Positions 2,696 through 36,481 of a DNA stretch of 64,000 nucleotides are shown piece by piece (the first letter of the stretch is position 1; every line of letters begins with the position of its first letter). Source of the DNA: Hyalangium minutum. Its GTDB lineage: Bacteria; Myxococcota; Myxococcia; Myxococcales; Myxococcaceae. Both the position numbers and the translations under genes were made by a program. Location of the stretch: assembly GCF_000737315.1 (NCBI RefSeq), contig NZ_JMCB01000002.1:558001-622000 (forward strand), written 5' to 3'. The notes below the pieces were generated by a model. It was not told the DNA's origin. It saw only the letters and a program-made list of their open reading frames with translations, and made no database searches.

Positions 2696-3065
2696 GCCCC
2701 CAACATGCGTGGGCCGGAGCTCGGCTGGAGGCCAAAAAGGCCCGAACGGTCGCAGGGGCTCGGTGAGCGGCCGGCGGCGGAACCCGAGGGTGCCGCGATA
2801 CATGGTGGTGTCCGATACATGTCAACAGCCCATTACACTCGGAGCCTGTCTGGCTTCCTGCTCCAGGAGCGGAGTGCACAGTGCTGCGCGGAATTTCGCG
2901 CTCAAGTTGGAAGGAGTGCTTGGGTCTCGACGTAAAATCCTGACCACAGCGAAAACCCCAAAGGAGCACATTGCAGCGAGGGCCCTGGAGCGTATGGTGG
3001 AAGGCCTTCGCGCGCCGGAGGGTCGGCTCTCAGCGCGTGAGTCCCTGTGTAGTGGAGGCCCCCCT

Positions 3066-6926: not shown

Positions 6927-6969
6927 GCGCGGTCCTTCTTGCCACGGCCGCGTCTCGCTGGGAACAGGG

Positions 6970-6998
6970 GGAGGCGGGCCTGCACCGCGCCCGCCTCC
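6970..6998. terminator. 10-bp GC stem-loop downstream of the gltG-like gene
   Basis: GGAGGCGGGC-N9-GCCCGCCTCC perfect stem. The U-tract is weak. Confidence 0.4.
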
Positions 6999-7007
6999 GG
7001 AGGGGTG

Positions 7008-8891
7008 TTACTTGCCCGCCTGCTTGAAGATGAACGGGTAGCTGACCACCACGGTGCCGCCGCCCTTGGGCTTGGGGAACATCCAGAGGCGCACGCGGCT
7101 GGCCACGCACGCATCCAGCTCCGCGTTGCCCGTGGTGGACTGCGCCACCTTCGCCTCGAGCACCCGGCCATCCGGGCCGATGGTGAACTGCGTCTGCACC
7201 TTGCCGTTCAAGTCAGGGTCCTGGTTGAGCTGGCGCTCGAAGCAGGAGCGGATCTGGTTCTTGTTGTCCTGGATGACCTTGCGGACGAGCTCCCGGTCCA
7301 GCGAGCCCTCGTTCACCTTGAACTCCACGGGCGCGATGGTGGGATCCACGCTCTCCTTGCCCGTGAGGCCGGGCACCTTCTGACCATAGCCGTCGTTGCC
7401 TCCCGCCCGGCCCGCGGTGCGGATGCCGTCCAGGCCGATGGTGCTGCCGCCCGTGCTCGGGCCACCCGAGCCTCCCTTCACCATCAGTCCGCCGAAGGGA
7501 CCGTTCGAGCCCAGCGCCACGTTGCGCACATTGCTGATGGCGTTGCGCAGGTCGGAGTTCCCGCCCGAGTTGCCGAAGAGCGAGGCAGAGCCCTTGCCGC
7601 TGAAGAGGTTCTTCGTGAAGCGCTGGGCCGTGTCCTTCGGGTTCGAGGGAGTGGCGGTGGACACTGCGGGCTGCGTCTGCTTGCGGATGGGCTTCTTGGG
7701 CTCGGACGTGGAGGGTTGCACGGGCTGCTTCGGCTGCTGGCGGGCCTTCTGGTCGTTGAGCTGGGCGAGGAACCGGTTCGGCTGCGGCTCGGGCGGCTTG
7801 ATGATGAGCTTGGTCAGGCGCTCGTGGTCGCCGCTCAGCTCGTCCGCGAAGGCCTCCTCGTCACCGGTGCGGTTGAGCGCGCCGATGATGAACATGGAGC
7901 TGGCGAAGAGCATCAGCAGCAAGATGTTCAGCGCGCGGTAGTCCACGGACTCGCTCAGCGGGACGTGGACCCGCTTGGGCACCGGCTGGAAGCAGACTTC
8001 CAACGCCACGCCGCCCAGGTCCACCCAGAAGACGTCGTCCGGCTCGAGCGCCAGCGTGTACGCGGAGTCCTCGTGCGAGGCCTTGCCGGACTCGATGACG
8101 GCCTCAAGGTCCAGCGTCTCCGCGTTGCGGATGAGCTCGCCCTTCATCTTCCCGGTGAAGCAGACGGTGTACGTGTGCCCATCGGTGCGGAGGACCTCCA
8201 GCTTCGGGCTGCCGAGCCGGGAGTCGCCCATGACGAAGTCCACGCCCTCGGCGGTGCCCACGCTGAAGGACTTCTTCTGGCCCGGAGGCAGGAAGAACTC
8301 GCCCACGCGCTGATCGACCCACACGAAGCTCAGGGACGCTCCGAGCGGGCCGCTCGTGTGGCTCCGGCGCACGGGAGCCGCGGGCTCGGTGTGTGGAGCC
8401 TGGGCCTCCGTGGGAACGGTCTCGTTCTGCGCGGTGGTGGCCATGGACGGAGCAAGGGCCAGAGTCTCGGGCACAGCCGAGGTCTCCACCGCCACGGGGC
8501 TGGCCTGCGCAATGACCGGAGCGGGAGCCTGCGTGACAACAGCCACGTTCGTGCTCGCCACAGCGGCGGAGACGTTCATCGCGGCCACGGCGGCCGGGTT
8601 CTCGAGGCGGAGGGTGGTCTCGCCCAGGCGGATCTCATCGCCGAAGGAGATGCGGCCCTTGTTGACGCGCTTGCCGTTGACGTAGGTGCCCTCGACGCTG
8701 CCCATGTCGATGATGGAGAGCGAGCCATCGGCGGCGACCTCGATGACGGAGTGCACGCGGCTGACCTTCTCGTCATCCAGGCGCAGGTGCGCCGACGACA
8801 GCCGGCCGATCTTGATGATGTCGCGGGCGAAGTCCTGCGAGGTGACGAGCGTCTCGCCCTTGAAAACCTTGAGTGTCAGAGGAATGGCCAT
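7008..8891 (-). CDS. GltG/AgmX-like protein: FHA domain, TM helix, periplasmic TonB-C-like domain (orphan paralog)
   Basis: MAIPLTLKVFKG...IKIGRLSSAHLRLDDEKVSRVHSVIEV FHA domain matching the myxobacterial GltG N-terminus; TM LNILLLMLFASSMFIIGAL; Gly-rich linker; C-terminal GSLDRELVRKVI...FPKPKGGGTVVVSYPF. Confidence 0.85.
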   Translation of the reverse strand: MAIPLTLKVFKGETLVTSQDFARDIIKIGRLSSAHLRLDDEKVSRVHSVIEVAADGSLSIIDMGSVEGTYVNGKRVNKGRISFGDEIRLGETTLRLENPAAVAAMNVSAAVASTNVAVVTQAPAPVIAQASPVAVETSAVPETLALAPSMATTAQNETVPTEAQAPHTEPAAPVRRSHTSGPLGASLSFVWVDQRVGEFFLPPGQKKSFSVGTAEGVDFVMGDSRLGSPKLEVLRTDGHTYTVCFTGKMKGELIRNAETLDLEAVIESGKASHEDSAYTLALEPDDVFWVDLGGVALEVCFQPVPKRVHVPLSESVDYRALNILLLMLFASSMFIIGALNRTGDEEAFADELSGDHERLTKLIIKPPEPQPNRFLAQLNDQKARQQPKQPVQPSTSEPKKPIRKQTQPAVSTATPSNPKDTAQRFTKNLFSGKGSASLFGNSGGNSDLRNAISNVRNVALGSNGPFGGLMVKGGSGGPSTGGSTIGLDGIRTAGRAGGNDGYGQKVPGLTGKESVDPTIAPVEFKVNEGSLDRELVRKVIQDNKNQIRSCFERQLNQDPDLNGKVQTQFTIGPDGRVLEAKVAQSTTGNAELDACVASRVRLWMFPKPKGGGTVVVSYPFIFKQAGK

Positions 8892-9090
8892 GAGGGCTCC
8901 CTGCTTGCTGGGATGCCGGTACAGACAGCGCCTTTTTCGGAAGGTTCCCGCCCGTTCGTGGCGGCGTGCGTTCCTGTTGTCGGTTTGAGTGGGACGCTGA
9001 GGTGCGACAGTGAAACACATGTGCCTGCCAGGCCAGGCGCGAGCACGTGGCCCGCCTGCGCCACGTCGGCGACAGCCCCGCCTGAATGTG

Positions 9091-9447
9091 TCAGGCCCGG
9101 CGGGGGGGCTTCTGGGCCGCGCGCTTCTTGGAGGACTGGGAGCTCTTGGCGGCGGCCTTGGGCTTCGAGCGAGGGACGACGTCTTCGAATTCGTAGAACC
9201 GCCTGCGGACGAAGTACATGGCGTTCATCAGCGCGTCCACGGAGCCCACACCGAAGGCGTAGTCGATGCCCTGGGTGACATGCTCGAAGTACATCGGGCA
9301 GTACCAGTGCGTACCGTCTTCGAGCAGAGCCGGGCGGCCGATGATGATGCGAGAGACTCGCTTCGTCCCATCTTCCGTCCGGTACGACCAGTAGTCGTCG
9401 GCGATGGGGTCATCAATCGAGGTGAGTTTGGGACGCCAGTCTTTCAT
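9091..9447 (-). CDS. Hypothetical protein (DUF6968-like), possible partner of the upstream Cys-rich lipoprotein
   Basis: 118-aa ORF with IIIGRP...WYCP...AFGVGSVDALMNA pattern and a basic tail; 40 bp downstream of 9487..9873 on the same strand. Family name is from memory. Confidence 0.6.
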   Translation of the reverse strand: MKDWRPKLTSIDDPIADDYWSYRTEDGTKRVSRIIIGRPALLEDGTHWYCPMYFEHVTQGIDYAFGVGSVDALMNAMYFVRRRFYEFEDVVPRSKPKAAAKSSQSSKKRAAQKPPRRA

Positions 9448-17597: not shown

Positions 17598-20500
17598 CTA
17601 CGGCTTGGGCGCGATGGACACCTTCACGCCGTCCTGCCACGTCTTGTGCTCGTCCGCGTAATAAAGGTACGCGCGGCTGGCCGGGCCCGTGTAGGTGCCG
17701 GGCACCGCCGCCACCAGGGACAGCGGCACGTCCAGCTTCTTCCGCGGCTCCATGCCTCGCCAGTAGAGCACCACGTCGCGGCCGATCACCTCGTACGCGT
17801 CCACCGTCTTCTTCTTTACCAGCTCCTTGAGCTGGTCGTGCCGCACCTCGAGCCCGCCCGGCACTCCGAAGATGGCCACCGCCGTGGGCAGCTGCTCGTC
17901 TGTCTTGTTGGAGACCAGCACCCGCGCCTCGGTGGGCTCGCCCTCGGTCAGCGCGTTCTTCGCCAGCGAGACTTCCAGCGCCACCTTCGTCTCCGGCGAG
18001 CTGTCCGGCTTCAGCGCGTTGTAAGTCACTTCGATGGAGTAGGGCAGCTCCGCGCCGCCCTCCATCCGCAGCTCGATCTTCCGCTCGCCCGGGATGATGA
18101 GCTCGGCAATGTCCGGCAGCTTGATGGCCTCCTGCGCCGAGGGCTCGAACTTCACCGCGCTGCCCACCGGCTGGCCGTTCACGTACACCCGCACCGCGCC
18201 GCCCGAGCGCTTCGCCGCCCGCGCCTTGTCGTAGGCCACGATGGCGCGCAGCGCCAGCACCGTGCTCTGCGTGGAGCCGTACCGCCCACCGTCACACGAG
18301 CTCGCCAGGAACTTCATCGAGCGCTCCACGTTCGCCGCGAAGGCCGGGTCTCTCAGCCACGCCAGCGTTGCCAGAGCGGTGGTCTCGATTTGCAGCGTTT
18401 CGCCCATGCTGCCCACGATGGACTGCGTGCCGCCCTCCACCACGCCCTCCTTGCTCTGCTTGGCCGCCAGCCGCTCCATCAGCTTCTTGGCCTCCCCCCC
18501 CTCCCCGGACAGCGAGAGGGCGTTGGCCGCCAGCGCCACCACGTAGCTGTTCTTGCTGTCCGCCGCCGCCCGCCGCAGCGAGGACAGCTCCTTCGACAGC
18601 TCCTTCACCATGTCCGCCGTCTTCGGAGCGCTCTCCAGCAGCGCCCAGGTGATGTACGCGTTCGAGGTGTCGCGGTCCTCGATCCACACGTGCAGGGCGC
18701 GGCGCTTGCGCTCGAAGCCGCCCTTGCCGTCGCGCTGCTTGAGCAGCCACTCGCGCGAGCGGGTCAGCATCGCCGAGTCCACCTCGCGCACCTGCTGCAT
18801 GTCCCCGAAGTGCAGCAGGCCGAACGCCGTGAGCGCCTCGTGGCCCGGGGCCTCGCCGAACCACTCGTAGCCCTTCTCCTTCGTCTCGAAGCCCACCAGC
18901 CGCTGGTAGCCCCGCTCCAGTTTCTCGCGTGCCGAGGCCACCAGCTTCGGATCCACCCCGCTGTGCGTCTGGAAGTACTGCTGCGCCATCGTCATCGGGT
19001 ACGTCGTGGAGCTCGTCTGCTCGAAGCAGCCCGAGGGCTCCTGGATGAGCCGCGACAGGGACTCGGTCATGTTCGCCAGCGGGCTCGGGTACACCACGAC
19101 GGACGCCTTCACGCTGCCGCGCACCGTGTTGGCCGGCAGCGTCACCGTGTGCACCGCTGGCGCCTTCGCCGACACCCTCCCGCCGAACGACGCCGTGATG
19201 GGGAAGCCGTTGGGCTTGATGACCAGGGCCCGCTGCACCTTGTCCGCGTAGTCCCCCGCTGTCGCCGCCAGCGTCAGGTCGATGGGCTTGGACTCCTGGC
19301 CGATCTTCAGCTCGATGATGCGCCGGGCGCGCTCCTTCGCCGCCAGATCCACCGCGCCCAGCGTCGTGGCGCGCACGTCGCCCTTGAAGTCGAGCTTCAC
19401 GCCCACGCCCTTCAGCGCGGAGGACGTGCCGTTCACCAGCGCCACCGGCAGCTGGACCACGTCGCCCGAGGTGACCTCCAGGGGAATCTTGGGCTCCACA
19501 TAGAAGGGCTGCACGGACTCGATGGACGCCACCGCCGAGCCCAGCACGCCGTCGCTGCCCACCGCTCCGGCGAACGCCTTGAACGAGGTGACCGAGTCGT
19601 TCAGGCCGAACTGGACCTTGGCCTCGCCCGTCTTTGGGTTCGTGCGCACGCCCGCGTTCCAGTAGAGCGTCTCCGAGAAGTCCACGCGGTCTCCCGCCTT
19701 CCGGCCCGGCCGCACCGTGTGCGCGTATACGCGGAAGTAGACCTCCTGCTGGTCGTAGGGCATCAACTCATCGGCTAGGGCCTCATGATCCGCCGCGATC
19801 TTTCGCTCCAGCCGCTGAGCCCGGTTCGCCTTGCGCGCTGCCTCGGCCATGTTGCGGTCCTCTTGTTGGCGCACCGGCTGGGCTGGCATCACCTGGCCCA
19901 TGGGAGCAGGCGGAGGCGGAGGCGGAGCGGGCGGCGGCGGGGCAGGAGGTGCCACGGCCACGGGCGGAGCCGCCATGGCGGGCGCGGGCCTCGGAGGCGG
20001 CCTCCCGCCCCGAGGCGCGTCATCGAAGTCGGCGCCTGCGGCCGCGAGCTCCGCCACCACCGCGGAAGTCGGAGCAGGCACCTGGGGCACGCGCACCGCG
20101 AACACCCGGCGGGCCAGGTCGCCGTGCTGCTCCACGAAGCTCACGGGATTCGCCAGCGCGAACCGCCGCCAGCCCTGCGTGCCGAGCAGCAGGTCCACCG
20201 CCGGCTTCGCCTTCGGGTTCTTCTCGTCCAGGTACACCTGCGCGTCGGCCAGCTCCTTCACCTCGGGCTCCAGCAGCACCATCACCGGCAGCTGGGGCGC
20301 CTGGTCGCGCTTCTCGATGAGCTCCAGCACCGCGTCATCCGTCACGGTGAGCATCACCAAGGCGGACACGGGCTTGCCGTCCCGCGTCGTCCGGGCGGTG
20401 AGCTGCACCGAGTCCCCCGGCACGTAGCTGGCCTTGTCCAGCTTCACCTCGACGTCGAGCGCCTTGGCTGGCTGGCGGAACACGAGCCGCTCCGCCAGGG

Positions 20501-21737
20501 GGCGCCCGTCGTGGTCCCACACCGTGGCGATGAGCACGCCGTCCGCGTCCTTGGGATCCAGCGTCACCTGACCCTGCGAGCCCACCTCGGCGGACGCCAG
20601 CTCCACCTCCTGCTTGCTCAGCGTCACCTTCGCCTTGCTCAGCCCCGAGAGCGCCACGGAGAGCGTCACCGGCTTGCCCGCCGCCGCCACGTCCTCGCCC
20701 GAGCGCAGCACGGCGCCCTTCGCCTTCGCCTCCGGCAGCGGAAAGCGCTTCTGGATGCCCGAGGGCTGGTCGATGCGCAGCGCGTACTTCGCGCCCGTCT
20801 TCGGAGTGAACTCGAAGCGGCCGCGGCCCTCGTGCTCGGAGCGCACCGAGGCCACCACCTGCCCGCTGGCCAGATCCACCACCGCGCCCACCAGGTCCGC
20901 GGGCTTCTGCGCCGGCGTCTTCGCCTCGAAGTAGACGCGCGAGGGCAGCCCCGCCACCAGGTCGCCGCCCTCCGGGTAGAAGGACAGGTCCAACGTCTGC
21001 AGCAGGATGGGGATCGTCTTGGCCGCTGTCTCCACCACGCCGCCGTCCTCGATGGAGAAGGCCAGCGAGCCCTCGCCGCGCTCGATGCGGGTGGGTAGCT
21101 TGAAGCTCACCGTGCACAGCCCCTTGTCGTTCACGGTGCCGGACACCTGCGCCGCGGTAGCGCCGTCCACCAGGGCGATGGCGGTCACCTTGGCGCCCGC
21201 GGGCACTCCGCCCTCGGCGCGCTTCACGTCCAGCGTGGCCGTCACGGTGTCACCCGGGCCGTAGCCATCCCGGAGGAACTCGATCTGCGACTTGAGCCGT
21301 GGGGCCCGGTAGGCGCGCACGTCGAACTTCCGCTCCGCGGGCGCGTCTCCCGTCCAGGGGTAGTTGACCCTCAGCGTGTACTCGCCGCCGGGCTGATCCG
21401 CGGGGATGGTCCACGCGTAGCCCCACACCGAGTCCTCCGTGCTCACCCTCGCGGAGGTGACCACGTCGCCCTTGGGCCCGCGGATCTCCAGCTGCGCTTG
21501 ATAAGGAGACGGGTTCAGCGTGTGGCGCACCGCTTCGAGCATCAGGCCGCGCGCCAGCACCTGCTCTCCGGGGCGGTACAGCGGCTTGTCCGTGGAGACA
21601 TAGGTACGGAAGCGGTTCGCGCCTCCCAGCGAGCCCGCGTCCGCCTTCGTGACGAGTACCTGATGAAAGGTGACAGGGACGGCCAGGCTCACGGTGAGCA
21701 TTGCCACGAGCACACGGGGAGTGAGTTCAACGAGCAT
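17598..21737 (-). CDS. Secreted alpha-2-macroglobulin/thioester-containing protein (MG2, bait region, TED, receptor-binding-like domain)
   Basis: TDKPLYRPG (MG2), FSETLYWN, Pro-rich bait region, PSGCFEQ thioester motif, YGSTQST, C-terminal receptor-binding-like domain; N-terminal hydrophobic signal without a lipobox. Confidence 0.9.
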   Translation of the reverse strand: MLVELTPRVLVAMLTVSLAVPVTFHQVLVTKADAGSLGGANRFRTYVSTDKPLYRPGEQVLARGLMLEAVRHTLNPSPYQAQLEIRGPKGDVVTSARVSTEDSVWGYAWTIPADQPGGEYTLRVNYPWTGDAPAERKFDVRAYRAPRLKSQIEFLRDGYGPGDTVTATLDVKRAEGGVPAGAKVTAIALVDGATAAQVSGTVNDKGLCTVSFKLPTRIERGEGSLAFSIEDGGVVETAAKTIPILLQTLDLSFYPEGGDLVAGLPSRVYFEAKTPAQKPADLVGAVVDLASGQVVASVRSEHEGRGRFEFTPKTGAKYALRIDQPSGIQKRFPLPEAKAKGAVLRSGEDVAAAGKPVTLSVALSGLSKAKVTLSKQEVELASAEVGSQGQVTLDPKDADGVLIATVWDHDGRPLAERLVFRQPAKALDVEVKLDKASYVPGDSVQLTARTTRDGKPVSALVMLTVTDDAVLELIEKRDQAPQLPVMVLLEPEVKELADAQVYLDEKNPKAKPAVDLLLGTQGWRRFALANPVSFVEQHGDLARRVFAVRVPQVPAPTSAVVAELAAAGADFDDAPRGGRPPPRPAPAMAAPPVAVAPPAPPPPAPPPPPPAPMGQVMPAQPVRQQEDRNMAEAARKANRAQRLERKIAADHEALADELMPYDQQEVYFRVYAHTVRPGRKAGDRVDFSETLYWNAGVRTNPKTGEAKVQFGLNDSVTSFKAFAGAVGSDGVLGSAVASIESVQPFYVEPKIPLEVTSGDVVQLPVALVNGTSSALKGVGVKLDFKGDVRATTLGAVDLAAKERARRIIELKIGQESKPIDLTLAATAGDYADKVQRALVIKPNGFPITASFGGRVSAKAPAVHTVTLPANTVRGSVKASVVVYPSPLANMTESLSRLIQEPSGCFEQTSSTTYPMTMAQQYFQTHSGVDPKLVASAREKLERGYQRLVGFETKEKGYEWFGEAPGHEALTAFGLLHFGDMQQVREVDSAMLTRSREWLLKQRDGKGGFERKRRALHVWIEDRDTSNAYITWALLESAPKTADMVKELSKELSSLRRAAADSKNSYVVALAANALSLSGEGGEAKKLMERLAAKQSKEGVVEGGTQSIVGSMGETLQIETTALATLAWLRDPAFAANVERSMKFLASSCDGGRYGSTQSTVLALRAIVAYDKARAAKRSGGAVRVYVNGQPVGSAVKFEPSAQEAIKLPDIAELIIPGERKIELRMEGGAELPYSIEVTYNALKPDSSPETKVALEVSLAKNALTEGEPTEARVLVSNKTDEQLPTAVAIFGVPGGLEVRHDQLKELVKKKTVDAYEVIGRDVVLYWRGMEPRKKLDVPLSLVAAVPGTYTGPASRAYLYYADEHKTWQDGVKVSIAPKP

Positions 21738-22000
21738 GAGGGTTCCCGGAAGAGGAGAGAGACGAGCGTCGCCGAGGAACGGGCCAGCTCGCAGAAAGTT
21801 CTCAGCGGCCCGCTCTGGGCGAGTCCTTCGAATGCCCCTTGCTTCTCAAAGCATGGATTGGCATTTCTGTTTTAACTGGTTTCAGGGGCCAGGGTCCCGC
21901 ATGACGCCTTTTGCCTCGCGTGAGGCAATCTGCCTCAAACGCCCCAAGCCTCCCTCCAGACGCTGAGTGCCAGCGATTCCCGAGGCTTGCTGGGACAGGC

Positions 22001-22017
22001 TGTAAACACCTGATACA
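22001..22017. promoter_or_regulatory. Putative enhancer (UAS) for a sigma54 activator
   Basis: TGT-N11-ACA (TGTAAACACCTGATACA), about 90 bp upstream of a -24/-12 element. Confidence 0.4.
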
Positions 22018-22105
22018 TTTTTCGCATGAGGCTGTGAGACATGCATGTGCCAGCCCTTTGGGGAAGGTGCACGCCAACCGCCTGAATTACGAGGATTTTT
22101 GGGAT

Positions 22106-22121
22106 TGGCCCGGTCCCTGCT
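22106..22121 (+). promoter_or_regulatory. Putative sigma54 (-24/-12) promoter of the M4 protease gene
   Basis: TGGCCCGGTCCCTGCT: GG-N10-GC spacing, close to TGGCACG-N4-TTGCT, about 50 bp before the start. Confidence 0.55.
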
Positions 22122-22171
22122 TTGTCCGGAGCGTTCCATCGGCGCCTCGCCGTGGACAGGAGGATCCCCCA

Positions 22172-24079
22172 TTGGTTCGCAATCGCATCGTTGCTGCTCT
22201 GCTCGCCACTCTCCCGCTCGCTGCCTGCGAGATGGCTGACCCCGACACCGCTGCTCCGGGGACGGAGAAGGTAGATGAGCTGGCGATCGGAGATGTGCAG
22301 TCCGCGCTCGCGGCGCTGCCGAGCGCCCGCGTGCTGGGCACTCACGCCAACGGCGTTCCCTACATGCTCGACGGCCGCCTGGGCACGGCGTCCGGCTCGG
22401 TGCAGGGGCTGGCGGGGCTGAACGCGAGCGACCAGGTGAGCCAGGCGCTCGCGAGCATCGCTCCGGCGTTCCGGCTGAACGCTTCGGATCTGGCCGTGCG
22501 CCGCGTCCGCACGGATGAGCAGGGCGTCACCCACATCCGCTACGCGCAGCTGAAGAACGGCCTGCCGGTGGTGGGCGAGGAGCTCATCCTCCACGTGAAC
22601 AAGGACGGCGCCATCGTCGCGGCCAACGGCACGGCGCGCGACGGCGAGCTGGTTCCCTCCAAGCCGGCCATCTCCGCGCTGGCGGCGGTGTCCGCGGCCC
22701 TGCGCTCCACGGTGGGCCGTCACATCGAGACCGAGGGCGAGGCGCGCCTGGTGTACCTGCGCACCGGCTCGGACGAGAAGCTGAAGCTGGCCTACGAGCA
22801 GATGGTGGTGGGCGAGGGCCAGGAGCTGCCCATCCGCGAGCGCGTGTACGTGAGCGCGGCGGACGGCTCCATCCTGGAGCGCCGCACGGAGATCTTCGCG
22901 GCGCTCAACCGCGCGCTGTACAGCGCCAACAACGGCACCTCGCTGCCGGGCACGCTCAAGCGCTCCGAGGGCGGTGCGGCCACGGGTGACAACCACGTGG
23001 ACACCAACTACGCGAAGCTGGGCGGCACCTACAACTGCTACAAGAACAACTTCAACCGCGACTCGTACAACAACGCGGGCGCGCAGCTGAAGAGCACGGT
23101 GCACTACAGCAGCAACTACGTGAACGCCTACTGGAACGGCACCCAGATGGTGTACGGCGATGGCGACGGCGTGAACAGCACCCAGCTGGGCCTGGACGCG
23201 GACGTCACCACGCACGAGCTGACGCACGCGGTGACCAGCTCCGAGTCCAACCTCACGTACTCGGGTGAGTCCGGCGGCCTGAACGAGGCCATGTCCGACA
23301 TCTTCGGCGCCTACTGCGAGAGCTACGACAGCGGCACCTGGAGCACCGGCGCGGACATCTGGAAGGTCGGCGAGGACATCTGGACCCCGTCCACCGCGGG
23401 TGACGCGCTCCGCTACATGGACGACCCGGCCAAGGACGGCGTGTCCAAGGACTTCTGGGTGTCGGGCGTCGGCAGCGCGGACGTGCACTACACCTCGGGC
23501 ATCGCGAACCTGGCGTTCAAGCTGCTGTCCACGGGCGGTACGCACCCGCGCGGCAAGTCCACCGTCAGCGTGACGGGCATCGGCGTGCAGAAGGCCGGCG
23601 CCATCTTCTACAAGGCCAACGTGGACCTGATGACGGCCTCCACCACCTTCGCCCAGGCGAAGACGTACACGGAGCAGGCGGCGGCCTCGCTGGGCTACAC
23701 GACGGCGGAGCAGGCCTCGGTGTCTGCGGCGTGGCAGGCGGTGGGCGTGGGCGCGCCCATCACCGCCATCGCGCTGACCAACGGCGTGGCGAAGACCGGC
23801 CTGGCGGGCTCCACGGGCTCGCAGACGTTCTACTCGCTGGCGGTTCCCTCGGGGAAGGCCGTGACCTTCGCGATGAGCGGTGGCACGGGTGACGCGGACA
23901 TGTACGTGAAGTTCGGCGCGCTGCCGACCACCACCGCGTACGACTGCCGCCCGTACCTCTCCGGCAACGCCGAGACGTGCAACATCGCGGCGAAGACCAC
24001 CGCGGGCACGTTCTACATCATGCTGAACGGCTACAGCACGTACTCGGGCGTCTCGCTCAAGGGCTCCTACACGCCGTGA
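22172..24079 (+). CDS. M4 family metallopeptidase lipoprotein with a C-terminal PPC domain
   Basis: TTG start after a GGAGG SD; LPLAAC lipobox; HELTH, GGLNEAMSD, DVHYTSG; PPC domain (GGTGDADMYVK, YDCRPY). Confidence 0.92.
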   Translation: MVRNRIVAALLATLPLAACEMADPDTAAPGTEKVDELAIGDVQSALAALPSARVLGTHANGVPYMLDGRLGTASGSVQGLAGLNASDQVSQALASIAPAFRLNASDLAVRRVRTDEQGVTHIRYAQLKNGLPVVGEELILHVNKDGAIVAANGTARDGELVPSKPAISALAAVSAALRSTVGRHIETEGEARLVYLRTGSDEKLKLAYEQMVVGEGQELPIRERVYVSAADGSILERRTEIFAALNRALYSANNGTSLPGTLKRSEGGAATGDNHVDTNYAKLGGTYNCYKNNFNRDSYNNAGAQLKSTVHYSSNYVNAYWNGTQMVYGDGDGVNSTQLGLDADVTTHELTHAVTSSESNLTYSGESGGLNEAMSDIFGAYCESYDSGTWSTGADIWKVGEDIWTPSTAGDALRYMDDPAKDGVSKDFWVSGVGSADVHYTSGIANLAFKLLSTGGTHPRGKSTVSVTGIGVQKAGAIFYKANVDLMTASTTFAQAKTYTEQAAASLGYTTAEQASVSAAWQAVGVGAPITAIALTNGVAKTGLAGSTGSQTFYSLAVPSGKAVTFAMSGGTGDADMYVKFGALPTTTAYDCRPYLSGNAETCNIAAKTTAGTFYIMLNGYSTYSGVSLKGSYTP

Positions 24080-24105
24080 TGTGCTGAGCGCTAACTGAGT
24101 GACTG

Positions 24106-24143
24106 CACCCCCGGGGGATTCTCCTCCCCGGGGGTGTTTCATT
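24106..24143 (+). terminator. Rho-independent terminator
   Basis: Perfect 11-bp stem CACCCCCGGGG-N9-CCCCGGGGGTG followed by TTTCATT, just after the protease stop. Confidence 0.7.
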
Positions 24144-24215
24144 TGCGGGGGAACGCTGCGCGGGGAGCTGCTTCTCACGCTGACGCGGCCCTACGCCAGA
24201 GGTAGGCTGCTGCTC

Positions 24216-25619
24216 ATGGACCTTCCCCCCTTCCAGGCATCGCACCCGGCCCTGCTCCCTCCGGGGACGGTGATAGGGGACTGGCGCGTGGAGGACTGGG
24301 CAGGCCGCGGCGTCTACGGCGCCGTCTACCGCGCGGCGCCGCTGCGAGCGGGGCCCGTCGCACCCGTGGCCCTCAAGATGGCGGTGCATTCAGAGGATCC
24401 CCGCTTCGTCCGGGAGGTGGAGCTGCTCTCCCGCTGCGACCACCCGAGCATTCCGAGGCTGTTGGGGCAGGGCTCGTGGCAGTCGCCCTCGGGCACCGTG
24501 TACCCTTTCTATGTCATGCAGTGGGTGGAGGGCGTGCGGCTGTACGCACAAGCCCGGCGCCACCCTGTCACTCCGGAGCAGGTGCGGCGCTGGCTGGCCC
24601 AGCTTGCGAGCGCCCTTGCAGTCCTGCATGCCCAGGGCGCCGTCCACCGCGACCTGAAAGGGGACAACGTGCTGGTGCGCCGCGCCGACGGGCGGGCCGT
24701 GCTCATGGACTTCGGCACGTGCTTCTACCCCGGGGCCGCCACGCTCACACCCCCGCTGGGGTTCCCTGGCACGCCGGCCTACCGCGCTCCCGAGTCCTGG
24801 CTCTTCGAGCTGCAATTCGAGCGCGACGCGATGGCCCGCTACCGCGCCACTCCGGCCGATGACCTCTACGCCCTGGGAGTCACCGCGTGCAGGCTCCTCA
24901 CGGGCGAGTACGCCGAGCCGGCCAACGCCTTCCAGGATGAGCACGGCACGTGGCACTTCGAACGAGTCGTGACACCGCCCGGGTTCCAGGATGACTCCCG
25001 GGTGGAGCCTTCGCTGCGCGCCGTGGTTCTGCGGTTGCTGTCGCTGCGTCCCGAGCAGCGAGGCACCGCGGAGCAACTGGCCGCCGAGCTGGAACAGGCT
25101 ACCGGGCCCCACAAGCCTGCGCAGCCCGTACGCGTCACAGTCCCTGAAATGCGAAAGTCTCTCGCCCGGCGGAGGTGGCCCTGGGCCGCCTTGGCCGCGG
25201 CGAGCGGGGGGTTGGCCGTGTGCGTATGGCCGGACGCTTCCCGTGAGTGGCTGGAGAAGGTGACCCTCGCCTGCATCGCCCCCGCCGGAGGGGACTCGCC
25301 GAGTCCGAGTACCAAGACACGAGGGCTCGCGGAGGAAGCAGCGGCCACATCCACGCAGCCAGCGCCTGCGGCTTCACCTCCGGACGGAATCGCCGAGGAC
25401 ACGCCGCCCAAGCCCCTGCTAGGGCAAACGCGGCCGGATGAGAAGGGGCGCTGTCCTCGCAGGTGGCAGGTCTCCCTCAATGGAGCTTGCTGGGCACAGT
25501 TCGCGCATGAGCGCGAGGCGTGTGATCTCATCAACGGGCAGATGTTCAAGGGCCTCTGCTACGTGCCAGTTCTTCTTCCGGGACGTAGCCCCACCTCCAG
25601 CCCCACGAACAACCCCTGA
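24216..25619 (+). CDS. Hanks-type Ser/Thr protein kinase with TM segment and Cys-containing C-terminal domain
   Basis: GRGVYG, VALK, HRDLKGDN, DFG, APE and DLYALG motifs; TM WPWAALAAASGGLAVCVW. Confidence 0.9.
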   Translation: MDLPPFQASHPALLPPGTVIGDWRVEDWAGRGVYGAVYRAAPLRAGPVAPVALKMAVHSEDPRFVREVELLSRCDHPSIPRLLGQGSWQSPSGTVYPFYVMQWVEGVRLYAQARRHPVTPEQVRRWLAQLASALAVLHAQGAVHRDLKGDNVLVRRADGRAVLMDFGTCFYPGAATLTPPLGFPGTPAYRAPESWLFELQFERDAMARYRATPADDLYALGVTACRLLTGEYAEPANAFQDEHGTWHFERVVTPPGFQDDSRVEPSLRAVVLRLLSLRPEQRGTAEQLAAELEQATGPHKPAQPVRVTVPEMRKSLARRRWPWAALAAASGGLAVCVWPDASREWLEKVTLACIAPAGGDSPSPSTKTRGLAEEAAATSTQPAPAASPPDGIAEDTPPKPLLGQTRPDEKGRCPRRWQVSLNGACWAQFAHEREACDLINGQMFKGLCYVPVLLPGRSPTSSPTNNP

Positions 25620-25679: not shown

Positions 25680-26486
25680 ATGAAGCTCGTTGCCAGCGTG
25701 AAGACACCGGCGGACGCGGAGGGCGCGGCGGTGGCGCTCGCGAAGGCGCTGGGCTTGAGCCTCGCCGAGGCGCGCATCCGCCTGGCACCCGAGCCGCCCG
25801 CCATCCTCGCCCAGCTTGCGCCCGAGTCCGCCGATGCGCTGGTGGCCTCGCTGCGGCAGGTGGGGCTGGCGGCGCTTGCGCTGGAAGCAACAGGGCCAGC
25901 AGAGGGGCTGCGGGTGGTGGCACGCACGGCGGTGCTGGGGCCCACGAAAGGCACATTCCAGGCGCGCACAGGAGCTCCGGTGGAGCTGCCGTGGAGCGAG
26001 GTGATCAGCATCCTTCGGGGCTCCAGCACGGTGCGCTCGGAGACGGAGAGCACCCAGAAGTCATCGAAGTTCTCCCTGGCGACGGCCATCGCCACCCAGG
26101 GGCTGAAGATGTCGCGGACGCAGGAGAAGACGGCGCGCTCGCAGCAGGAAGACACCGAGCAGGCCATCCTGGTGCACGGCCGCCAAGGCCAGCGTGTGGT
26201 GCTGCGCGAGCGCGAGCTGGACTTCGCGTGCCTGCACGCGGCGATGCAGCCCACCCGGACGGCCAACATGCTGGCGCTGGCGAAGCTGCTCAAGGAGCGG
26301 TCCCCCACGGCCTTCTATGACGAGCGCCTGTTGCGCCTGGGCCGGCGCCCGCTGCCGATGTTCGTCGGCGGAGAGACGCGCGAGCAGAGCGGTGGAGTGT
26401 CGCAGACGCGCCTGGACACCGCTGGAGGCATGGAGGTGCTCGCGGAGATCCTCACGCGCGCGGTCGAGGAGCGGCTCCTACCGTGA
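25680..26486 (+). CDS. Hypothetical protein
   Basis: 268-aa ORF with strong GC3 bias and a plausible SD; no motif recognised. Confidence 0.7.
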   Translation: MKLVASVKTPADAEGAAVALAKALGLSLAEARIRLAPEPPAILAQLAPESADALVASLRQVGLAALALEATGPAEGLRVVARTAVLGPTKGTFQARTGAPVELPWSEVISILRGSSTVRSETESTQKSSKFSLATAIATQGLKMSRTQEKTARSQQEDTEQAILVHGRQGQRVVLRERELDFACLHAAMQPTRTANMLALAKLLKERSPTAFYDERLLRLGRRPLPMFVGGETREQSGGVSQTRLDTAGGMEVLAEILTRAVEERLLP

Positions 26487-27641
26487 GGTGAGCGGAAGCG
26501 CGCCCCGGGGACACTCCACCGGCTCGCAGCGCCCCTGGCCGTGGGCTTCGCAGCAGTAGAGCGGCTCCCGGCGCTCGTTGAGGAAGTGCATGCTCCAGCC
26601 GGTGGGGAAGACCTCCAGCACGGCGAACCCCCAGGCCGTGGAACCGAAGCGCAGGCGCGCTCCCGGAGCGGGCTCGGGGCCGAACTTCTCGAAGCGGGTC
26701 TTCGCCGCGCTCCCAGACACGAACACGTCGTAGCCCTTCGCCGTGACGGAGTGTTGCAAGTCGTGGTCGTGACCGGACAGCCAGGCGTCGATGCGGCCCG
26801 CCTCTTCCAGGCGACGCGCACGTTCCTGGTACGCCGGGGTGAGTGTCTCTGGCTGGTGCTTACCCGCCGTCACGGACATGTGGTGCGACACCAGGAAGCA
26901 CCGGCGCTCACCACAGCCCGCCACGGCCTCCTTCACGAAGGCCAGCTCCTCCTCGAACGAGAATGCATAGTCGTCGTGCGCCAGCGTGTTCGAGTCGAAG
27001 AGGACGAACCGCGCTGTGGGCGTGTCGACCACGAAGTGCCGTCCCGGCATGGTCCAGTTCGGCCCTTGGTGCGCCACCTCCAGGCACGCCTTCAGCCGCG
27101 AGGTGCGGGTGGGCACCTTGCCAGTCCAGAAGCACGACCGGGAGTAGCCCGCATCGTGGTTCCCCAGCACCGTGTGGATGGGCAGTGGGGAGCCATCCGC
27201 CCGCTTCAGATCCTCCAGCGGCGCGTGGAACACGGCCTGGAACTGCTTGTCCTCCGGCGGCTGGTAGCCGGGCGTGACGGTGTTTTCGTCCGCGCTGAAG
27301 GTGCAGTCCTCGGCTCCGGGCAGGGACAACTCCGGGCCGCACGGGTACAGGTTGTCCCCGAGCAGCAGGCCGAAGTCGAACGGCTTGGCGCGGTGCTCCT
27401 CGGCCATGGCGCGCGCCACGGCCGTCTGTTGCCGGCCATGGAGGCCAAAGTCTCCGAACACCAGCACCCGCACCAGCGGCGCCGGTGTCCGCTCGAGCGT
27501 GGGCGCGGGCGGCGCGGGATCCGCGACGTACGTCTCCCGCTGCACGTAGCTCCACGTCACGATCGCGGCGGGCGCCAGCAGCGCCACCACCGCGAGGGTC
27601 AGGGTGACGCTGAGGCGCCGCTTGGACGGAGCAGGGCGGAT
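26478..27641 (-). CDS. Metallophosphoesterase (purple acid phosphatase-like), N-terminally anchored; start codon uncertain
   Basis: GDFG, GDNLY, GNHD, SHH and GHDH motifs. The frame stays open upstream of GTG 27590 as far as an ATC at 27641. Confidence 0.85.
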   Translation of the reverse strand: MRPAPSKRRLSVTLTLAVVALLAPAAIVTWSYVQRETYVADPAPPAPTLERTPAPLVRVLVFGDFGLHGRQQTAVARAMAEEHRAKPFDFGLLLGDNLYPCGPELSLPGAEDCTFSADENTVTPGYQPPEDKQFQAVFHAPLEDLKRADGSPLPIHTVLGNHDAGYSRSCFWTGKVPTRTSRLKACLEVAHQGPNWTMPGRHFVVDTPTARFVLFDSNTLAHDDYAFSFEEELAFVKEAVAGCGERRCFLVSHHMSVTAGKHQPETLTPAYQERARRLEEAGRIDAWLSGHDHDLQHSVTAKGYDVFVSGSAAKTRFEKFGPEPAPGARLRFGSTAWGFAVLEVFPTGWSMHFLNERREPLYCCEAHGQGRCEPVECPRGALPLTSR

Positions 27642-27644
27642 GGA

Positions 27645-28979
27645 CTACCCCGCAGCGCGGATGGACTCGCGGAGGACCTCGGTCATGCGGCGCAGCTCGT
27701 CCGGCGTGGAGATGAACGGCGGGCCCATGGCGAGGATGTCGCCCGTGAAGCGGAACAGCACGCCCCGCTTGAGCGCCTCCTCGAACACCTTGAGGGCGCG
27801 CAGGCCAGGCTTGCCCTCGATGGGCGCCAGCTCCACCGCCGCCGCCAGCTGGCAGTTGCGGATGTCGATGACGTTGGGCTCGCCCTTCAGCGAATGCGCC
27901 GCGTCCTCCAGCACCGGCACCAGGGACTTCACGCGCTCGTTGATGCCCTCGGTGGCCAGGATGTCCAGCGTGGCGTGCGCGGCGGCCACCGCCAGCGGGT
28001 GCCCCGAGTACGTGTACCCGTGGAAGAACTCCACCGCGTGCTCCGGGCCCGTCATCAGCGTGTCGTACAGGTCCTTGCGGGCGATGACGCCGCCCATGGG
28101 CACCGTGCCGTTGTTCACGCCCTTGGCGAAGGTGATCATGTCGGGCGTCACGCCGAAGTGCTGCGCCGCGAAGTGGGTGCCCATGCGGCCAAAGCCGGTG
28201 ATCACCTCGTCGAAGATGAGCAGGATGCCGTTCTTGGTGCAGATCTCCCGCAGCCGCTCCAGGTAGCCCTTGGGCGGGACGATGACGCCGGTGGAGCCCT
28301 GCATGGGCTCGACGATGACGGCGGCGATGGTGGAGGCGTCATGCAGGGCGATGAGCCGCTCCAGCTCGTTGGCCAGGTGCGCGCCCCAGGTGGGCTCGCC
28401 CTTGGTGAAGGCCATCTCCTTGGGGTTGTACGTGTGGGGCAGGTGGTCCACGCCCGTCAGCATGGCCGAGGCGTACATCTTCCGGTTGGCCACCATGCCG
28501 CCCACGGAGATGCCGCCAAAGCCCACGCCGTGGTAGCCGCGCTCGCGGCCGATGAAGCGGGTGCGGCTCGCCTCACCCTTGGTGCGGTGGTAGGCCAGGG
28601 CCATCTTCATCGAGGTGTCCACCGCCTCGGAGCCCGAGTTCACGAAGAACACCTGGCCCATGCCCGCTGGCGCCATGCCGACGATGCGCTCGGCCAGCTT
28701 GAAGGTGGGGCCGTAGCCCATCTGGAACGCGGGGCTGTAGTCCACGCTGTCCAGCTGCTGCTTGACGGCCTCGACAATCTTGGGGTGGCGGTGGCCCAGC
28801 CCGCAGCACCACAGGCCGGACAGGGCGTCGAAGAGCTTCTCGCCCTCGGTGGTCCAGTAGTAGGCGCCCTCGGCCTTGGCCAGCATGCGGCGCGAGTGGT
28901 GCTGCTTGAAGTAGCGGTTGTGGGTGAACGGCATCCAATACGCCGCCAACTCCCGATCGTTCGGCTCGAGGCTTCCCAT
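27645..28979 (-). CDS. Class III PLP aminotransferase (omega-amino acid/beta-alanine:pyruvate type)
   Basis: YWMPFT, GLWCCGLGH, NSGSEAVD, YHG, DEVITGFGR, FAKG (PLP lysine), GYTYSGHP. Confidence 0.9.
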   Translation of the reverse strand: MGSLEPNDRELAAYWMPFTHNRYFKQHHSRRMLAKAEGAYYWTTEGEKLFDALSGLWCCGLGHRHPKIVEAVKQQLDSVDYSPAFQMGYGPTFKLAERIVGMAPAGMGQVFFVNSGSEAVDTSMKMALAYHRTKGEASRTRFIGRERGYHGVGFGGISVGGMVANRKMYASAMLTGVDHLPHTYNPKEMAFTKGEPTWGAHLANELERLIALHDASTIAAVIVEPMQGSTGVIVPPKGYLERLREICTKNGILLIFDEVITGFGRMGTHFAAQHFGVTPDMITFAKGVNNGTVPMGGVIARKDLYDTLMTGPEHAVEFFHGYTYSGHPLAVAAAHATLDILATEGINERVKSLVPVLEDAAHSLKGEPNVIDIRNCQLAAAVELAPIEGKPGLRALKVFEEALKRGVLFRFTGDILAMGPPFISTPDELRRMTEVLRESIRAAG

Positions 28980-29115: not shown

Positions 29116-32100
29116 CTACGCGGGGGGAGGGGCGGAAGCCGTCAGCCCCTCGAAGTGGCCCTTGAGGCGTCCCGCGAAGCGGTCTGCCGCCTCGGGCGGG
29201 AGCTGGGAGCACGTCTGCAGGTGGAGGCTGCCGTCGAGCACGTAGCAGTAGACGGCGAGGGCCGGGATGTCCTGCAGCACCTTGACGCTCCGCATCTTGA
29301 AGCGCCCGAGGTTGGAGTCGAGAACGCCCAGGTTGACGATGAAGAGGCGGCCCGGCGCGGTGAACATCTCCCACACCCCGGGGATCCAGAGCAGCTTGGC
29401 TACCGCTCCAAAGCCGTCCGCCATCTTGTTGTAGTGCGCGGGCTCCATGCCCGCGTAGGTCCGCTTGTCGACATAGGCCTGGTGTTCCTGGTGGAAGTGG
29501 CGGGCCAGCTCCCAGAAGCCGGTCGCCGGGCCGACGTCCAGCACGAACTTCGGATAGGTGGCGTAGTACCCCAGCGTGTCAGTCGGGAGGTTGAGCAGCG
29601 GCCGTGCGTCGAACGAGCCCACGAGCATCAAGCGGTGGGGCTTGGGGGCCGGGCAGAAGAGCTCCCGCGCGGTGAGGCACAGCGCCGCCGACAGGGCTCC
29701 GGTCACCGAGCTCTGCTGGCGGGCCGCGGTGCCCAGCACCTGGCGCGTCGCGTCTCGGCCCATCGTCACCATGCGGGACGCGCCTGCCACCGAGATCTCC
29801 TGATCCCGCTTCTTCTGGGCTCCGAACGGCGCCTTGAACTTGTTCACCCGGAAGACCTCCAGGGGGGAGAGGACCTCCTGGCCGGTCTTGGCGACACCCT
29901 CCTCGGGGTGAAGGGCTACCGGAGCCAGGCCTCTCGCCGGTAGCTGGGAGAACAGGTCCTCGCGCGCGGCCGGGAGCGGCTGGGGCTTGACGTCCACAGG
30001 CGCCCCGGTCAGCAGCCGCTCGTAGATGTCGAACAGATCGCGCACCAGCATCACGAAGGCGTGAACCTCGAGGTAGCAGTGCCAGATGATGGGGATGACT
30101 TGGTAGGCCTCGGGCTCGCCCTTCGAGCGGATGAAGAGGATCTTCTTCTGCCCGGGGTCGCGCAGGTGGCGAGCGACGAGCTGCTCCAGCGGCTCCGTTC
30201 CCATCTCGGGGAGGAACACGAGCTCCAGCTGGCGGCCCGGCTGGTACTCCAGGAAGAACTCGCCGCGCTTCTTCTCGACGATGGAGGCACCCAGATAGGG
30301 GTAGCGCTTCTCCAGCAGCGCGGCCGCCTGCCGCATCCGCTCCGGATCGATGGAGCCCTCGATGTCCATCACGGGGTTGATGTGCAGGAGCCCCCGGCGG
30401 TTGGCCTGATAGACCAGGGACTCGAAGGCACCCAGGCGCCGCTGCACGGTCGCGCTCCAGGAGGCCAGCAGCGCGCCGTTCAGGAGCGGAGGGGCTTCCT
30501 GGCGGGTGGGCACGTCACCCTGGGGCTCGGTGGGCGCCTGCGCGATCGCCTGGGCGATCTTCTCGATCGTGTTGTGCTGGACCAGGAAGTTCGGGTCCAG
30601 CTTGAGCTGGAACTCTGTCTCCAGCTCCCGGAGGAGCGTGATGAACAAGATGGAGTCCAGCCCCAGGCTCCACAGGGTCGCCGTGGCGGGCAGCGGGCCC
30701 TCGGCCGACACGCTGATCCCCTGGACGATCTTCGAGACACGCTCGACGACGCCGGTGCGAGGACGGGCGCGCGGGGCGGGAGCCGCCGCTCCGGGCGTGA
30801 CGCCGTCCCGAGGAGCCTTCTGGGCCTCCCGGTTCTTCAGGCGGAGCTTGTCCACCTTGAAGGTGCCCGTCATCGGCATCTCGTCGATGAACTCCACCTC
30901 GACAGGGACCTTGTAGCCCGCCAGGTGTCCCCGGCAGAAAGCCGTCACCTCTCGCGGGGACAGGGAGTGTCCTGACCGGAGGCGGATGACCGCCTTGACC
31001 ACCTCTCCCGCCGTGGGGTTTGGGATGCCGTAGACTGCGGCCTGCTGCACCGCCGGATGGAGCGCGAGGACACGCTCGACCTCGCTCGGGTACACGTTCT
31101 CCCCGTACGAGATGATCATGTCCTTCTTGCGGCCCGCGATGGTCAGGTAGCCGTCGGGCCGGATCGTCGCGAGGTCTCCTGTCTTGAACCAGCCATCCTG
31201 GAAGGACTCCCGGGTCGCGGGGCCGTCATTGAAGTAGCCGTTGAAGACCGTCAGGCCGCGGATCCACACCTCCCCTGGCGTCTGGTTGTCGCGAGGCACG
31301 TCCGCGCCCCGGTCATCGACGATGCGCACCTCCATGAGCTTGAACGGCCGGCCGGAGGTGGCGATCAGCTCGAACTGCTCGGCGCGGGTGCGCTGGCGGT
31401 GTTCCTCTGAGAGGAGCGACATGGAGATCTTTCCGCAGCACTCCGTCATGCCGTAGGACATGAAGATCTCGCAGCCGAAGAGCTGGATGAGCTTGTCCAC
31501 CGAGGCGGCGTCGAGGGCCGAGCCTCCGCAGGAGAGGATCCGCAGCCGGCTGAAGTCGTGCGTTCCCACATCGGGGCTGTGGATGAGGAAGTGGGCCGCG
31601 GCCGCGGCGAGGTTCGTGCAGGTGATGCGCTCGCTGGCGAGCAGCCGCAAGAAGTGGGTGGGGTCCGGCTCCGAGACGATGACGTGCTGTCCACCCAGCC
31701 ACGTCAGTGCGTAGATCGCGAAGGCATCCACCACATGGTACATGGGCGAGAAGTGCCCCCAGACATCCTCGCCGGTGATGCGCATCTCCTCGGCGGTCGC
31801 GATGGCGTGGTGGAACACCTGGCGATGGGAGAGGAGCACGCCCTTGGGGAAGCCCGTCGTGCCGCTCGTGTAATAGAGCTGGAACGCATCGAACTCGGTT
31901 CCCCGGTTCGGGACGAAGGGAGCGGCTGAACCGGCGAGGGCCTCCTCGTAGCCGCGCGAAGTGGCGAGCTTCGAGGCCTGCTCGGGGAGCGTCTGGCGCT
32001 CCGGGCCGCTGTCGACCCACAGGACGCCGCTGAGGTTCAGCCCTCCGAGCCCCACGGCTTCTGACAGGGTCTGCGCGAAGTCCGCCGAGGTGATGATCCA

Positions 32101-36092: not shown

Positions 36093-36481
36093 GGCGGCGA
36101 TCTTACTGATGCCCTGGAGGTAGAGGTGCCCAAAGTGCTCACGCTGGCTCGCCCCCTCGTCCTCCATGCTCACCATGCGAGCGAGTGCAAAATACTTCGC
36201 CACCTTCGCGTCATGGACGCTTCAGGGAGCGCTGCGGAATGACACTGGGAGACGGACGGCACGGCGGCGATGAAGGGCAACGATCCGGATGCATGCGCGC
36301 TCACGTACCCCCGCGTCCCTGAAAGGTTCCCAGAATTGAAGCGGGAGTTCCCTGTCTCTCTCGATGAGCGAGTTTCCAGGTTCACCGAAGGGGTAGGGGA
36401 CAGGGGCTTACTTTGGGTTCGGCGCCATGCGAGGCGGGTTGTGCTAGGACTTGGGTGAGCGACCGCTGCCCACCGTACACC

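Follow-up and report, generated by a model that had tools for sequence, protein, structure and literature searches.

A predicted myxobacterial thioester protein with a histidine at the catalytic position of C3, A2ML1 and CD109 represents a large, animal-like bacterial family

The window analyzed here, a stretch of 64,000 nucleotides (nt) from Hyalangium minutum (contig NZ_JMCB01000002.1, positions 558,001 to 622,000), has a GC content of ~69%. At 17598..21737 of its minus strand lies a complete open reading frame (ORF) with an ATG start, coding for 1379 amino acids (aa) plus a stop codon. An earlier sequence-only reading had placed a bacterial thioester protein at these coordinates and had pointed to its thioester motif and to a histidine-containing loop; the ORF list and the translation confirm the coordinates and both motifs and add the strand, which had not been stated. 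Judged by sequence and predicted structure, the product has the domain set of the A2M/C3 thioester protein (TEP) superfamily, namely an MG ring, a TED that is inserted in a CUB domain and carries a CxEQ motif, and an activation segment within MG6. Its domains, motifs and neighboring genes are listed in Table 1.

The ATG start codon is supported because orthologues share the N-terminus MLxELxPR. This conserved, ordinary Sec-like N-terminus has a hydrophobic core (aa 9-24) followed by KADA, and in the AlphaFold2 (AF2) model it forms a helix (aa 6-17) that leads into a low-confidence linker. It consists of the signal only, which looks cleavable, with neither a transmembrane anchor nor an anti-sigma-like extension; the C-terminus showed no sorting signal. 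The protein contains three cysteines, the first of which is residue 208; because no Cys precedes this position, there is no lipobox, as the sequence-only reading had maintained. Taken at face value, the sequence describes a product that is probably a Sec-exported, non-lipidated, soluble and monomeric thioester protein. NCBIfam holds no model specific to the protein, and a scan of the locus for promoters and terminators was uninformative.

Pfam searches recovered MG2 (aa 45-140), A2M (PF00207; aa 690-776, E = 3.5e-13) and TED_complement (aa 888-1169, E = 1.5e-31), together with sub-threshold matches to A2M_BRD and bMG10 (E = 0.015). The protein has no Pfam match to A2M_recep or NTR/C345C and no ANATO match at E<=0.1, and it ends with MG8 at aa 1379. 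Two AF2 models complete this picture. The N-terminal model (pLDDT 83.5 overall, mostly >90 in the MG domains) contains four blocks of seven strands, and in Foldseek searches the N-terminal half matches the MG ring of the C3 beta-chain over ~515 columns. Residues 23-153 align to C3 residues 89-215; since the first MG domain thus aligns to MG2 of C3 and A2M, MG1 is absent, and the protein has one MG domain less than the TEPs of animals. The second model (aa 680-1379; pLDDT 89.5, pTM 0.80) shows MG7, CUB, a TED of 13 helices, CUB and MG8 in this order. Within MG8, Tyr1325 and Tyr1360 are invariant, and the family profile aligns SRAYLYY to VKVYDYY of human A2M and extends into the latter up to residue ~1431 (chain 7von) or 1457 (chain 6tav). 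The resemblance of the C-terminus to a receptor-binding domain, which had been proposed from the letters of the DNA, is thus upheld by the profile alignment to human A2M MG8 and by the AF2 fold.

Table 1. Features of the thioester protein gene and its surroundings in the window (aa, residues of the thioester protein)
Feature	Coordinates	Strand	Basis or remark
Probable Sec signal peptide, aa 1-34	21636..21737	-	Hydrophobic windows aa 1-30; putative cleavage site
Four complete MG domains (aa 43-140, 148-241, 250-333, 341-421) and first three strands of split MG6 (aa 428-466)	20340..21611	-	AF2, Pfam, Foldseek
Helical linker/bait-region-domain scaffold, aa 468-540, with LLLGTQGWRRF	20118..20336	-	AF2 helices aa 468-546
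Bait-like hypervariable insert, aa 541-660	19758..20117	-	Lies between MG6 halves; identity and pLDDT
Second half of MG6 and MG7, aa 668-841	19215..19736	-	Pfam A2M; beta strands in both AF2 models
CUB, first part, aa 845-882	19092..19205	-	AF2 strands ahead of TED
TED (alpha/alpha barrel), aa 886-1173	18219..19082	-	Pfam TED_complement; thirteen AF2 helices
Thioester motif GCFEQ, aa 903-907 (Cys904, Gln907)	19017..19031	-	Translation
Catalytic-residue loop GGFERKRRALH, aa 1006-1016	18690..18722	-	Translation; His1016 codon 18690-18692
CUB, second part, aa 1180-1241	18015..18200	-	AF2 strands after TED
MG8/receptor-binding-domain homologue, aa 1252-1379	17601..17984	-	AF2 beta sandwich with one helix, aa 1300-1308 (DQLKELVKK)
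MshEN-domain protein, 350 aa	16418-17470	-	127 nt downstream of TEP gene; kept in relatives L001 and L082
M4 thermolysin-like peptidase, secreted type (FTP, M4, M4_C, PPC domains)	21911..24079	+	Divergent from TEP gene
Ser/Thr protein kinase, 506 aa	24099..25619	+	Follows M4 gene
Metallophosphoesterase	26478-27590	-	Upstream of TEP gene
Class-III aminotransferase	27645-28979	-	Upstream of TEP gene
Nonribosomal peptide synthetase (NRPS)-like protein	29116-35193	-	Upstream of TEP gene

The segment between the two halves of MG6 differs from everything around it. Among 118 full-length orthologues, its identity drops to 0.12-0.40, with 22-53% gaps, against 60-95% identity in the flanks and 0.68-0.94 in the adjoining linker (aa 468-540). 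A Pro/Ala-rich, disordered part (~aa 567-627; pLDDT <50 at aa 573-598 and at aa 613-627) is followed by a long helix with many charges (aa 628-656), as predicted by AF2, and the segment contains no Cys. The equivalent segment is likewise Pro/Ala-rich and charged in close relatives, and its length varies from 125 to 634 aa across the family. A predicted protease-accessible segment thus sits within MG6, as in the TEP superfamily, and in its conservation pattern and predicted disorder the insert behaves like the bait of A2M or the protease-sensitive region of TEPs, unlike a folded anaphylatoxin domain. One partial planctomycete homologue (P0170) has two strongly hydrophobic, transmembrane-like segments inside the bait-equivalent region, which is odd for a bait.

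Both motifs are strongly conserved. GCFEQ is kept in all 120 of the closest homologues, and GGFx(R/K)xRRALH, including its His, is present in 119 of them, down to 57% identity. The sole close homologue without RKRRALH, P0120 (Myxococcus llanfairpwll...), reads GGFTPPGDQADTSNAY at this place, lacks the His, and retains GCFEQ. His1016 lies 112 residues after Cys904 and eight residues after Phe1008. A chance occurrence of the motif can be dismissed because of the TED_complement match, the accompanying MG2 and A2M domains, and the conservation in 120 homologues.

The sequence-only reading had equated His1016 with the catalytic His of C3 and C4B, quoting motifs of human proteins that proved to be correct: the C3d sequence DGVFQEDAPVIH is 100% identical to PDB 6rmt, and GCFRSSGSLLN of A2M is found in the PDB alignment. 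The equation itself also stands. In a hidden Markov model (HMM) of 147 bacterial TEDs, the His1016 column coincides with VIH of C3 and LLN of A2M, with a posterior of ~0.9, and a second family profile places it on NLLH of A2ML1, RVIH of CD109 and, again, LLN of A2M. A pairwise phmmer alignment, which opens a four-residue gap before the His and sets it on a Lys of A2M, was rejected since the two profiles disagree with it. Compared with animal TEPs, the deletion falls after the His, so that the His-type loop lacks the xxGG by which their catalytic residue is followed. By profile alignment, His1016 is the positional equivalent of the catalytic His in C3, A2ML1 and CD109.

This position is occupied in a regular way throughout a large family. 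The best 120 database matches are orthologues from Hyalangium, which provides the closest named relatives, and from Vitiosangium, Archangium, Cystobacter, Stigmatella, Corallococcus, Pyxidicoccus and Myxococcus; databases name them only “MG2 domain-containing protein”, “A-macroglobulin complement component” or “YfaS-family”. A HMMER search with the C-terminal 700 aa retrieved 2154 clusters (50% identity) at E<1e-30, the best 150 of which all scored <1e-129, and a genome scan found family members in Myxococcota, Planctomycetota, Obscuribacterales/Melainabacteria, Lentisphaeria, Victivallales and Kiritimatiellia. Of the 150 top-scoring cluster representatives, 146 contain GCFEQ. In the catalytic column, 109 of 147 distant cluster representatives have Asp (~74%) and 34 have His (~23%); among 79 genomic loci, His occurs in 52 and Asp in 25. 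A neighbor-joining tree of 151 sequences requires ~14 changes by parsimony, with Asp reconstructed at the midpoint root. It contains 13 separate His groups (maximal single-residue groups), three of which are neighbors and make up the lineage of the window protein; further ones are a 10-member planctomycete clade and several isolated replacements of Asp by His within an Asp-type loop. The loop takes a different form with each residue: ALDxF occurs in 105 of 109 sequences of the Asp type and ALHxW in 26 of 34 His-type sequences, the His-type loop being one residue shorter. The same Asp/His pair separates human C4A from C4B and also occurs among invertebrate TEPs (PMC7016707). In view of the repeated alternation of Asp and His and of their separate loop forms, the column appears to be a functional position that modulates the thioester, and alignment across the family identifies the His as a subfamily hallmark that is not peculiar to this gene. 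The gene is accordingly one ordinary member of a large annotated family, in which the alternation of Asp and His is the notable feature.

The same data bear on the view that His1016 is not catalytic, and that a remodeled loop leaves an uncatalyzed, mainly amine-reactive thioester like that of A2M, with the His serving a structural or pH-sensing role. A loop 4-8 residues shorter than in animal TEPs, the absent GG after the catalytic residue, the phmmer placement on Lys and a pLDDT <50 for RALHV (aa 1013-1017) all fit such a role. Two independent profile alignments nevertheless agree, at high posterior, in matching the His to the catalytic column, and essentially Asp or His alone, switching repeatedly over >140 divergent clusters, would be unexpected for a structural residue. 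We therefore regard a non-catalytic His1016 as very unlikely.

A second group of His-type paralogues is present in myxobacteria (L009, L010, L011, L013), with ~58-60% identity to the window protein. At all four of these loci, a pair of M16 (insulinase-like) peptidase genes lies 0.7-1.4 kb downstream on the same strand (L009:11510-14409). In the literature searched, no paper dealt with this bacterial family or with A2M proteins or TEPs of myxobacteria, and a 2021 survey that described archaeal A2M homologues mentions, as far as bacteria are concerned, the E. coli type alone (PMC8416519).

The surroundings of the gene include no partner that is conserved across the family. The M4 peptidase and kinase genes (21911-25619, ~3.7 kb) form an insertion that separates the TEP gene from a conserved ORF of 268 aa. 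The pair also lies beside the TEP gene of a 92%-identical relative (L082), but is absent from relatives with 84-88% identity (L001, L083, L006) and from all 80 family loci, among them Hyalangium relatives with 86-88% identity, which marks it as a recent lineage-specific insertion. The M4 peptidase was considered as a cognate activator or target and rejected, since it is a neighbor only in this genome and in L082. On the other side, the downstream gene encodes an MshEN domain, the kind of cyclic-di-GMP-binding domain with which secretion ATPases begin. The NRPS-like protein upstream (2025 aa) combines thiamine-pyrophosphate enzyme domains with adenylation, PCP and condensation-like domains, and the block that it forms with the aminotransferase and metallophosphoesterase genes is conserved in close relatives only. 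PADLOC defence models matched neither the protein nor its neighbors. Elsewhere in the window, we noted a 1251-aa AsmA/DUF748-like protein (36413-40168, plus strand), a 1167-aa protein with PD40 beta-propeller repeats (40701-44204, plus strand), and two ORFs of >1000 aa each (2607-5786 and 5904-9278) without a Pfam match, which may not be real genes at 69% GC. Families that recur in the flanks of the 80 loci are promiscuous ones, namely Ser/Thr kinases, histidine kinases and extracytoplasmic function (ECF) sigma factors.

The planctomycete His-type clade (L066:1250-7308, L080, P0162, P0183, P0188, P0203, P0209, P0216) has a distinct organization. An N-terminal extension of ~100-150 aa, with a conserved LLELHYGLL..E.A and no Pfam match, is followed by one transmembrane-like segment and then by the full TEP body. 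At the L066 locus, the TEP gene is preceded, 141 nt upstream and on the same strand, by the end of an ECF sigma-70 gene; L031, L069, L075 and L039 likewise have ECF sigma genes close to their TEP genes. From their sequences, the planctomycete proteins look like fusions of an anti-sigma factor with a TEP and could be protease-sensing switches. Extended to the Hyalangium protein, this would mean that bait cleavage reports envelope proteolysis to a signaling pathway, a reading that the cytoplasmic position of the planctomycete extension and the adjacent sigma factor genes would favor. The window protein, however, lacks both a transmembrane anchor and an anti-sigma-like extension, no sigma factor is encoded next to it, and the kinase encoded nearby is part of the lineage-specific insertion. 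For the protein studied here, a role as a protease sensor is thus extremely improbable.

From the His, the sequence-only reading had gone on to a possible opsonin-like protein that is not simply a protease trap, and this step is not borne out. Two protease inhibitors, A2ML1 and CD109, have the same His, which is therefore not diagnostic of an opsonin; for this gene, the His alone cannot tell opsonin from inhibitor. A2ML1 is monomeric and conjugates proteases through hydroxyl and amino groups by an acyl-imidazole route (PMC9156758), and CD109 and some invertebrate TEPs carry the His as well (PMC7016707). Moreover, the C3-specific anaphylatoxin and C345C domains are absent, a bait-like segment is present as in A2M-type inhibitors, and A2ML1 is the top Foldseek match. 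The lack of anaphylatoxin and C345C domains does not in itself discriminate between the roles, because it is common to the inhibitors A2ML1 and CD109 and to the opsonin TEP1.

A secreted opsonin or tag of the complement/TEP1 type, once activated by extracellular proteolysis, would use the His to catalyze ester links to carbohydrate hydroxyls of the prey envelope or of the bacterium's own matrix, and would thereby label or glue such surfaces instead of inhibiting the protease. In its favor, the His occupies the C3/C4B position, the switching between Asp and His parallels the target preference of C4A and C4B, the window protein has no membrane anchor, and an MG ring, CUB-TED and MG8 without C345C also fit TEP1 (profile E = 6e-63), insect TEPs being proteins without shown inhibition. 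The divergently encoded, secreted M4 peptidase of this genome and of the 92%-identical relative could serve as activator. Against it, nothing indicates that the protein crosses the outer membrane, the neighborhood contains no conserved gene for a receptor or for a convertase-like or LRIM-like partner, and the M4 gene arrived recently. In other family members, an N-terminal transmembrane segment serves as inner-membrane anchor, which suggests that some of the family, if not all of it, acts in the periplasm. On balance, we consider an opsonin rather unlikely. A broader variant, a bacterial covalent tagging system that is tuned like C4A and C4B (Asp for amines, His for hydroxyls), in which the His-type myxobacterial protein would be released, activated by secreted proteases such as the M4 enzyme, and ester-linked to carbohydrate surfaces as an opsonin or adhesive, seems distinctly unlikely.

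By analogy with A2ML1, we favor a protease-triggered covalent trap, to which we assign somewhat better than an even chance. In the resting state, the native-like model suggests that a Cys904-Gln907 thioester would be buried between TED and MG8. A protease would cleave the exposed, disordered and fast-evolving bait-like segment, upon which the protein would rearrange and expose the thioester. His1016 would then attack the thioester to form an acyl-imidazole, from which the acyl group of Gln907 could be passed to a nearby hydroxyl or amine. Because the acyl-imidazole intermediate is short-lived, the attacking protease would be the most probable target. Such a trap may shield the periplasm or the near-cell surroundings of a bacterium whose habitat is rich in proteases. 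That the catalytic column essentially tolerates two residues, both with known and distinct thioester chemistries, is in keeping with this proposal. Several points weigh against it. Within the model, the His loop is predicted with the lowest confidence, and it is four residues shorter than in A2M and eight shorter than in C3. Many proteases cleave poly-Pro/Ala sequences poorly. The architecture of a TEP1-type opsonin fits equally well, and for TEP1 no protease inhibition has been shown. Finally, the flanks of 80 family loci contain no conserved partner gene, and the literature search found no biochemical data for any family member.

Previous work on bacterial A2M-family proteins dealt only with lipoproteins of the YfhM/ECAM type and with the MagD type, which has no thioester, and the gene described here represents a much larger, unstudied bacterial family. 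If the chemistry of the animal proteins carries over, the alternation of Asp and His provides natural variants that are amenable to genetics and on which the tuning of thioester targets can be studied, and a route to asking which roles covalent protease traps or tags play in predatory bacteria and in those with complex envelopes. The family also bears on whether animal and bacterial TEPs are linked by an ancient transfer and, should the tagging reading be true, on the origin of animal thioester proteins.

Compared with the characterized bacterial types, the protein stands apart. YfhM (ECAM) and Salmonella A2M (type I; PDB 4ziq, 5a42, 4u48) are likewise exported and have a CxEQ thioester and an MG2-like domain. 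YfhM, however, is a protein of 1653 aa with the lipobox LALAGC, extra N-terminal domains (MG0/NIE), the motif CLEQ and, in E. coli, an adjacent pbpC gene, whereas the window protein has 1379 aa and begins with MG2 straight after the signal peptide. A tblastn search with E. coli PbpC (E<=1e-3) gave no match in the 64-kb window, so that the lack of an adjacent pbpC, and with it the proposed contrast to the E. coli type (no lipobox, no pbpC, weak similarity to YfhM), is confirmed. None of the top 50 Foldseek matches is a YfhM-type structure, and identity with this type is excluded by the missing lipobox, pbpC linkage and extra N-terminal domains. For the catalytic column of YfhM, hhalign and MAFFT gave PYAD, an assignment of low confidence that was not used. 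The MagD type (type II) is described as lacking a thioester motif and as encoded in a mag operon (PMC5764988); this identity is ruled out as well, since the thioester motif is present and conserved operon partners are absent. According to sequence and models, the protein belongs to a third, animal-TEP-like bacterial class that is distinct from either characterized type.

In sequence and predicted fold, the family is much closer to animal A2M, A2ML1, CD109, TEP1 and C3 than to E. coli YfhM. The family profile ranks human A2M first (E = 3e-75), followed by A2ML1 (3.5e-69), CD109 (1e-64), TEP1 (6e-63) and C3 (1e-54), then C4, and finally YfhM (~1e-32 to 1e-28, with partial coverage); the profile of bacterial TEDs reaches 133 bits with human A2M, 95 with C3d and 19 with E. 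coli YfhM. In Foldseek comparisons, the model of aa 680-1379 reaches TM-scores (TM) of 0.70-0.78 with native A2ML1, C3, C5, frog A2M, CD109, A2M and TEP1r, and of 0.33-0.38 with activated C3b and induced A2M. Complement C3 and C4B share with the bacterial protein the thioester and a His eight residues after the Phe (PVIH), ~112-116 residues past the Cys, and native C3 matches the model with TM 0.76-0.77; the Asp/His alternation of the bacterial family mirrors C4A, the Asp isotype, and C4B. Unlike C3 and C4, the bacterial protein has no anaphylatoxin, C345C/NTR or MG1 domain and no convertase or regulator context, and the absence of the anaphylatoxin and C345C domains rules out a C3/C4/C5-type identity. 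TEP1 of Anopheles gambiae (PDB 2pn5, 4d94; TM 0.70, ~18% identity) has the same architecture without these two domains, a protease-sensitive region taking the place of the anaphylatoxin. It is an opsonin stabilized by LRIM1/APL1C, and no such partner was seen at the bacterial loci. CD109 has the His in the same column (RVIH), and its native structure matches with TM 0.75 (~19% identity in the Foldseek alignment); unlike the bacterial protein, it is eukaryotic, anchored by glycosylphosphatidylinositol (GPI) and equipped with MG1. A2ML1 is the top Foldseek match over MG7-CUB-TED-MG8 (E = 1e-41, TM 0.78) and likewise combines a His in the same column, a bait region inside MG6, and the lack of anaphylatoxin and C345C domains. 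At ~20% identity, the bacterial protein differs from A2ML1 in the absence of MG1, in CFEQ instead of CGEQ, in a shorter His loop without the following GG, and in a much longer Pro/Ala-rich insert; its three Cys suggest few or no disulfides. Taken together, these comparisons indicate by analogy that the protein is most likely to work as A2ML1, CD109 or an insect TEP does.

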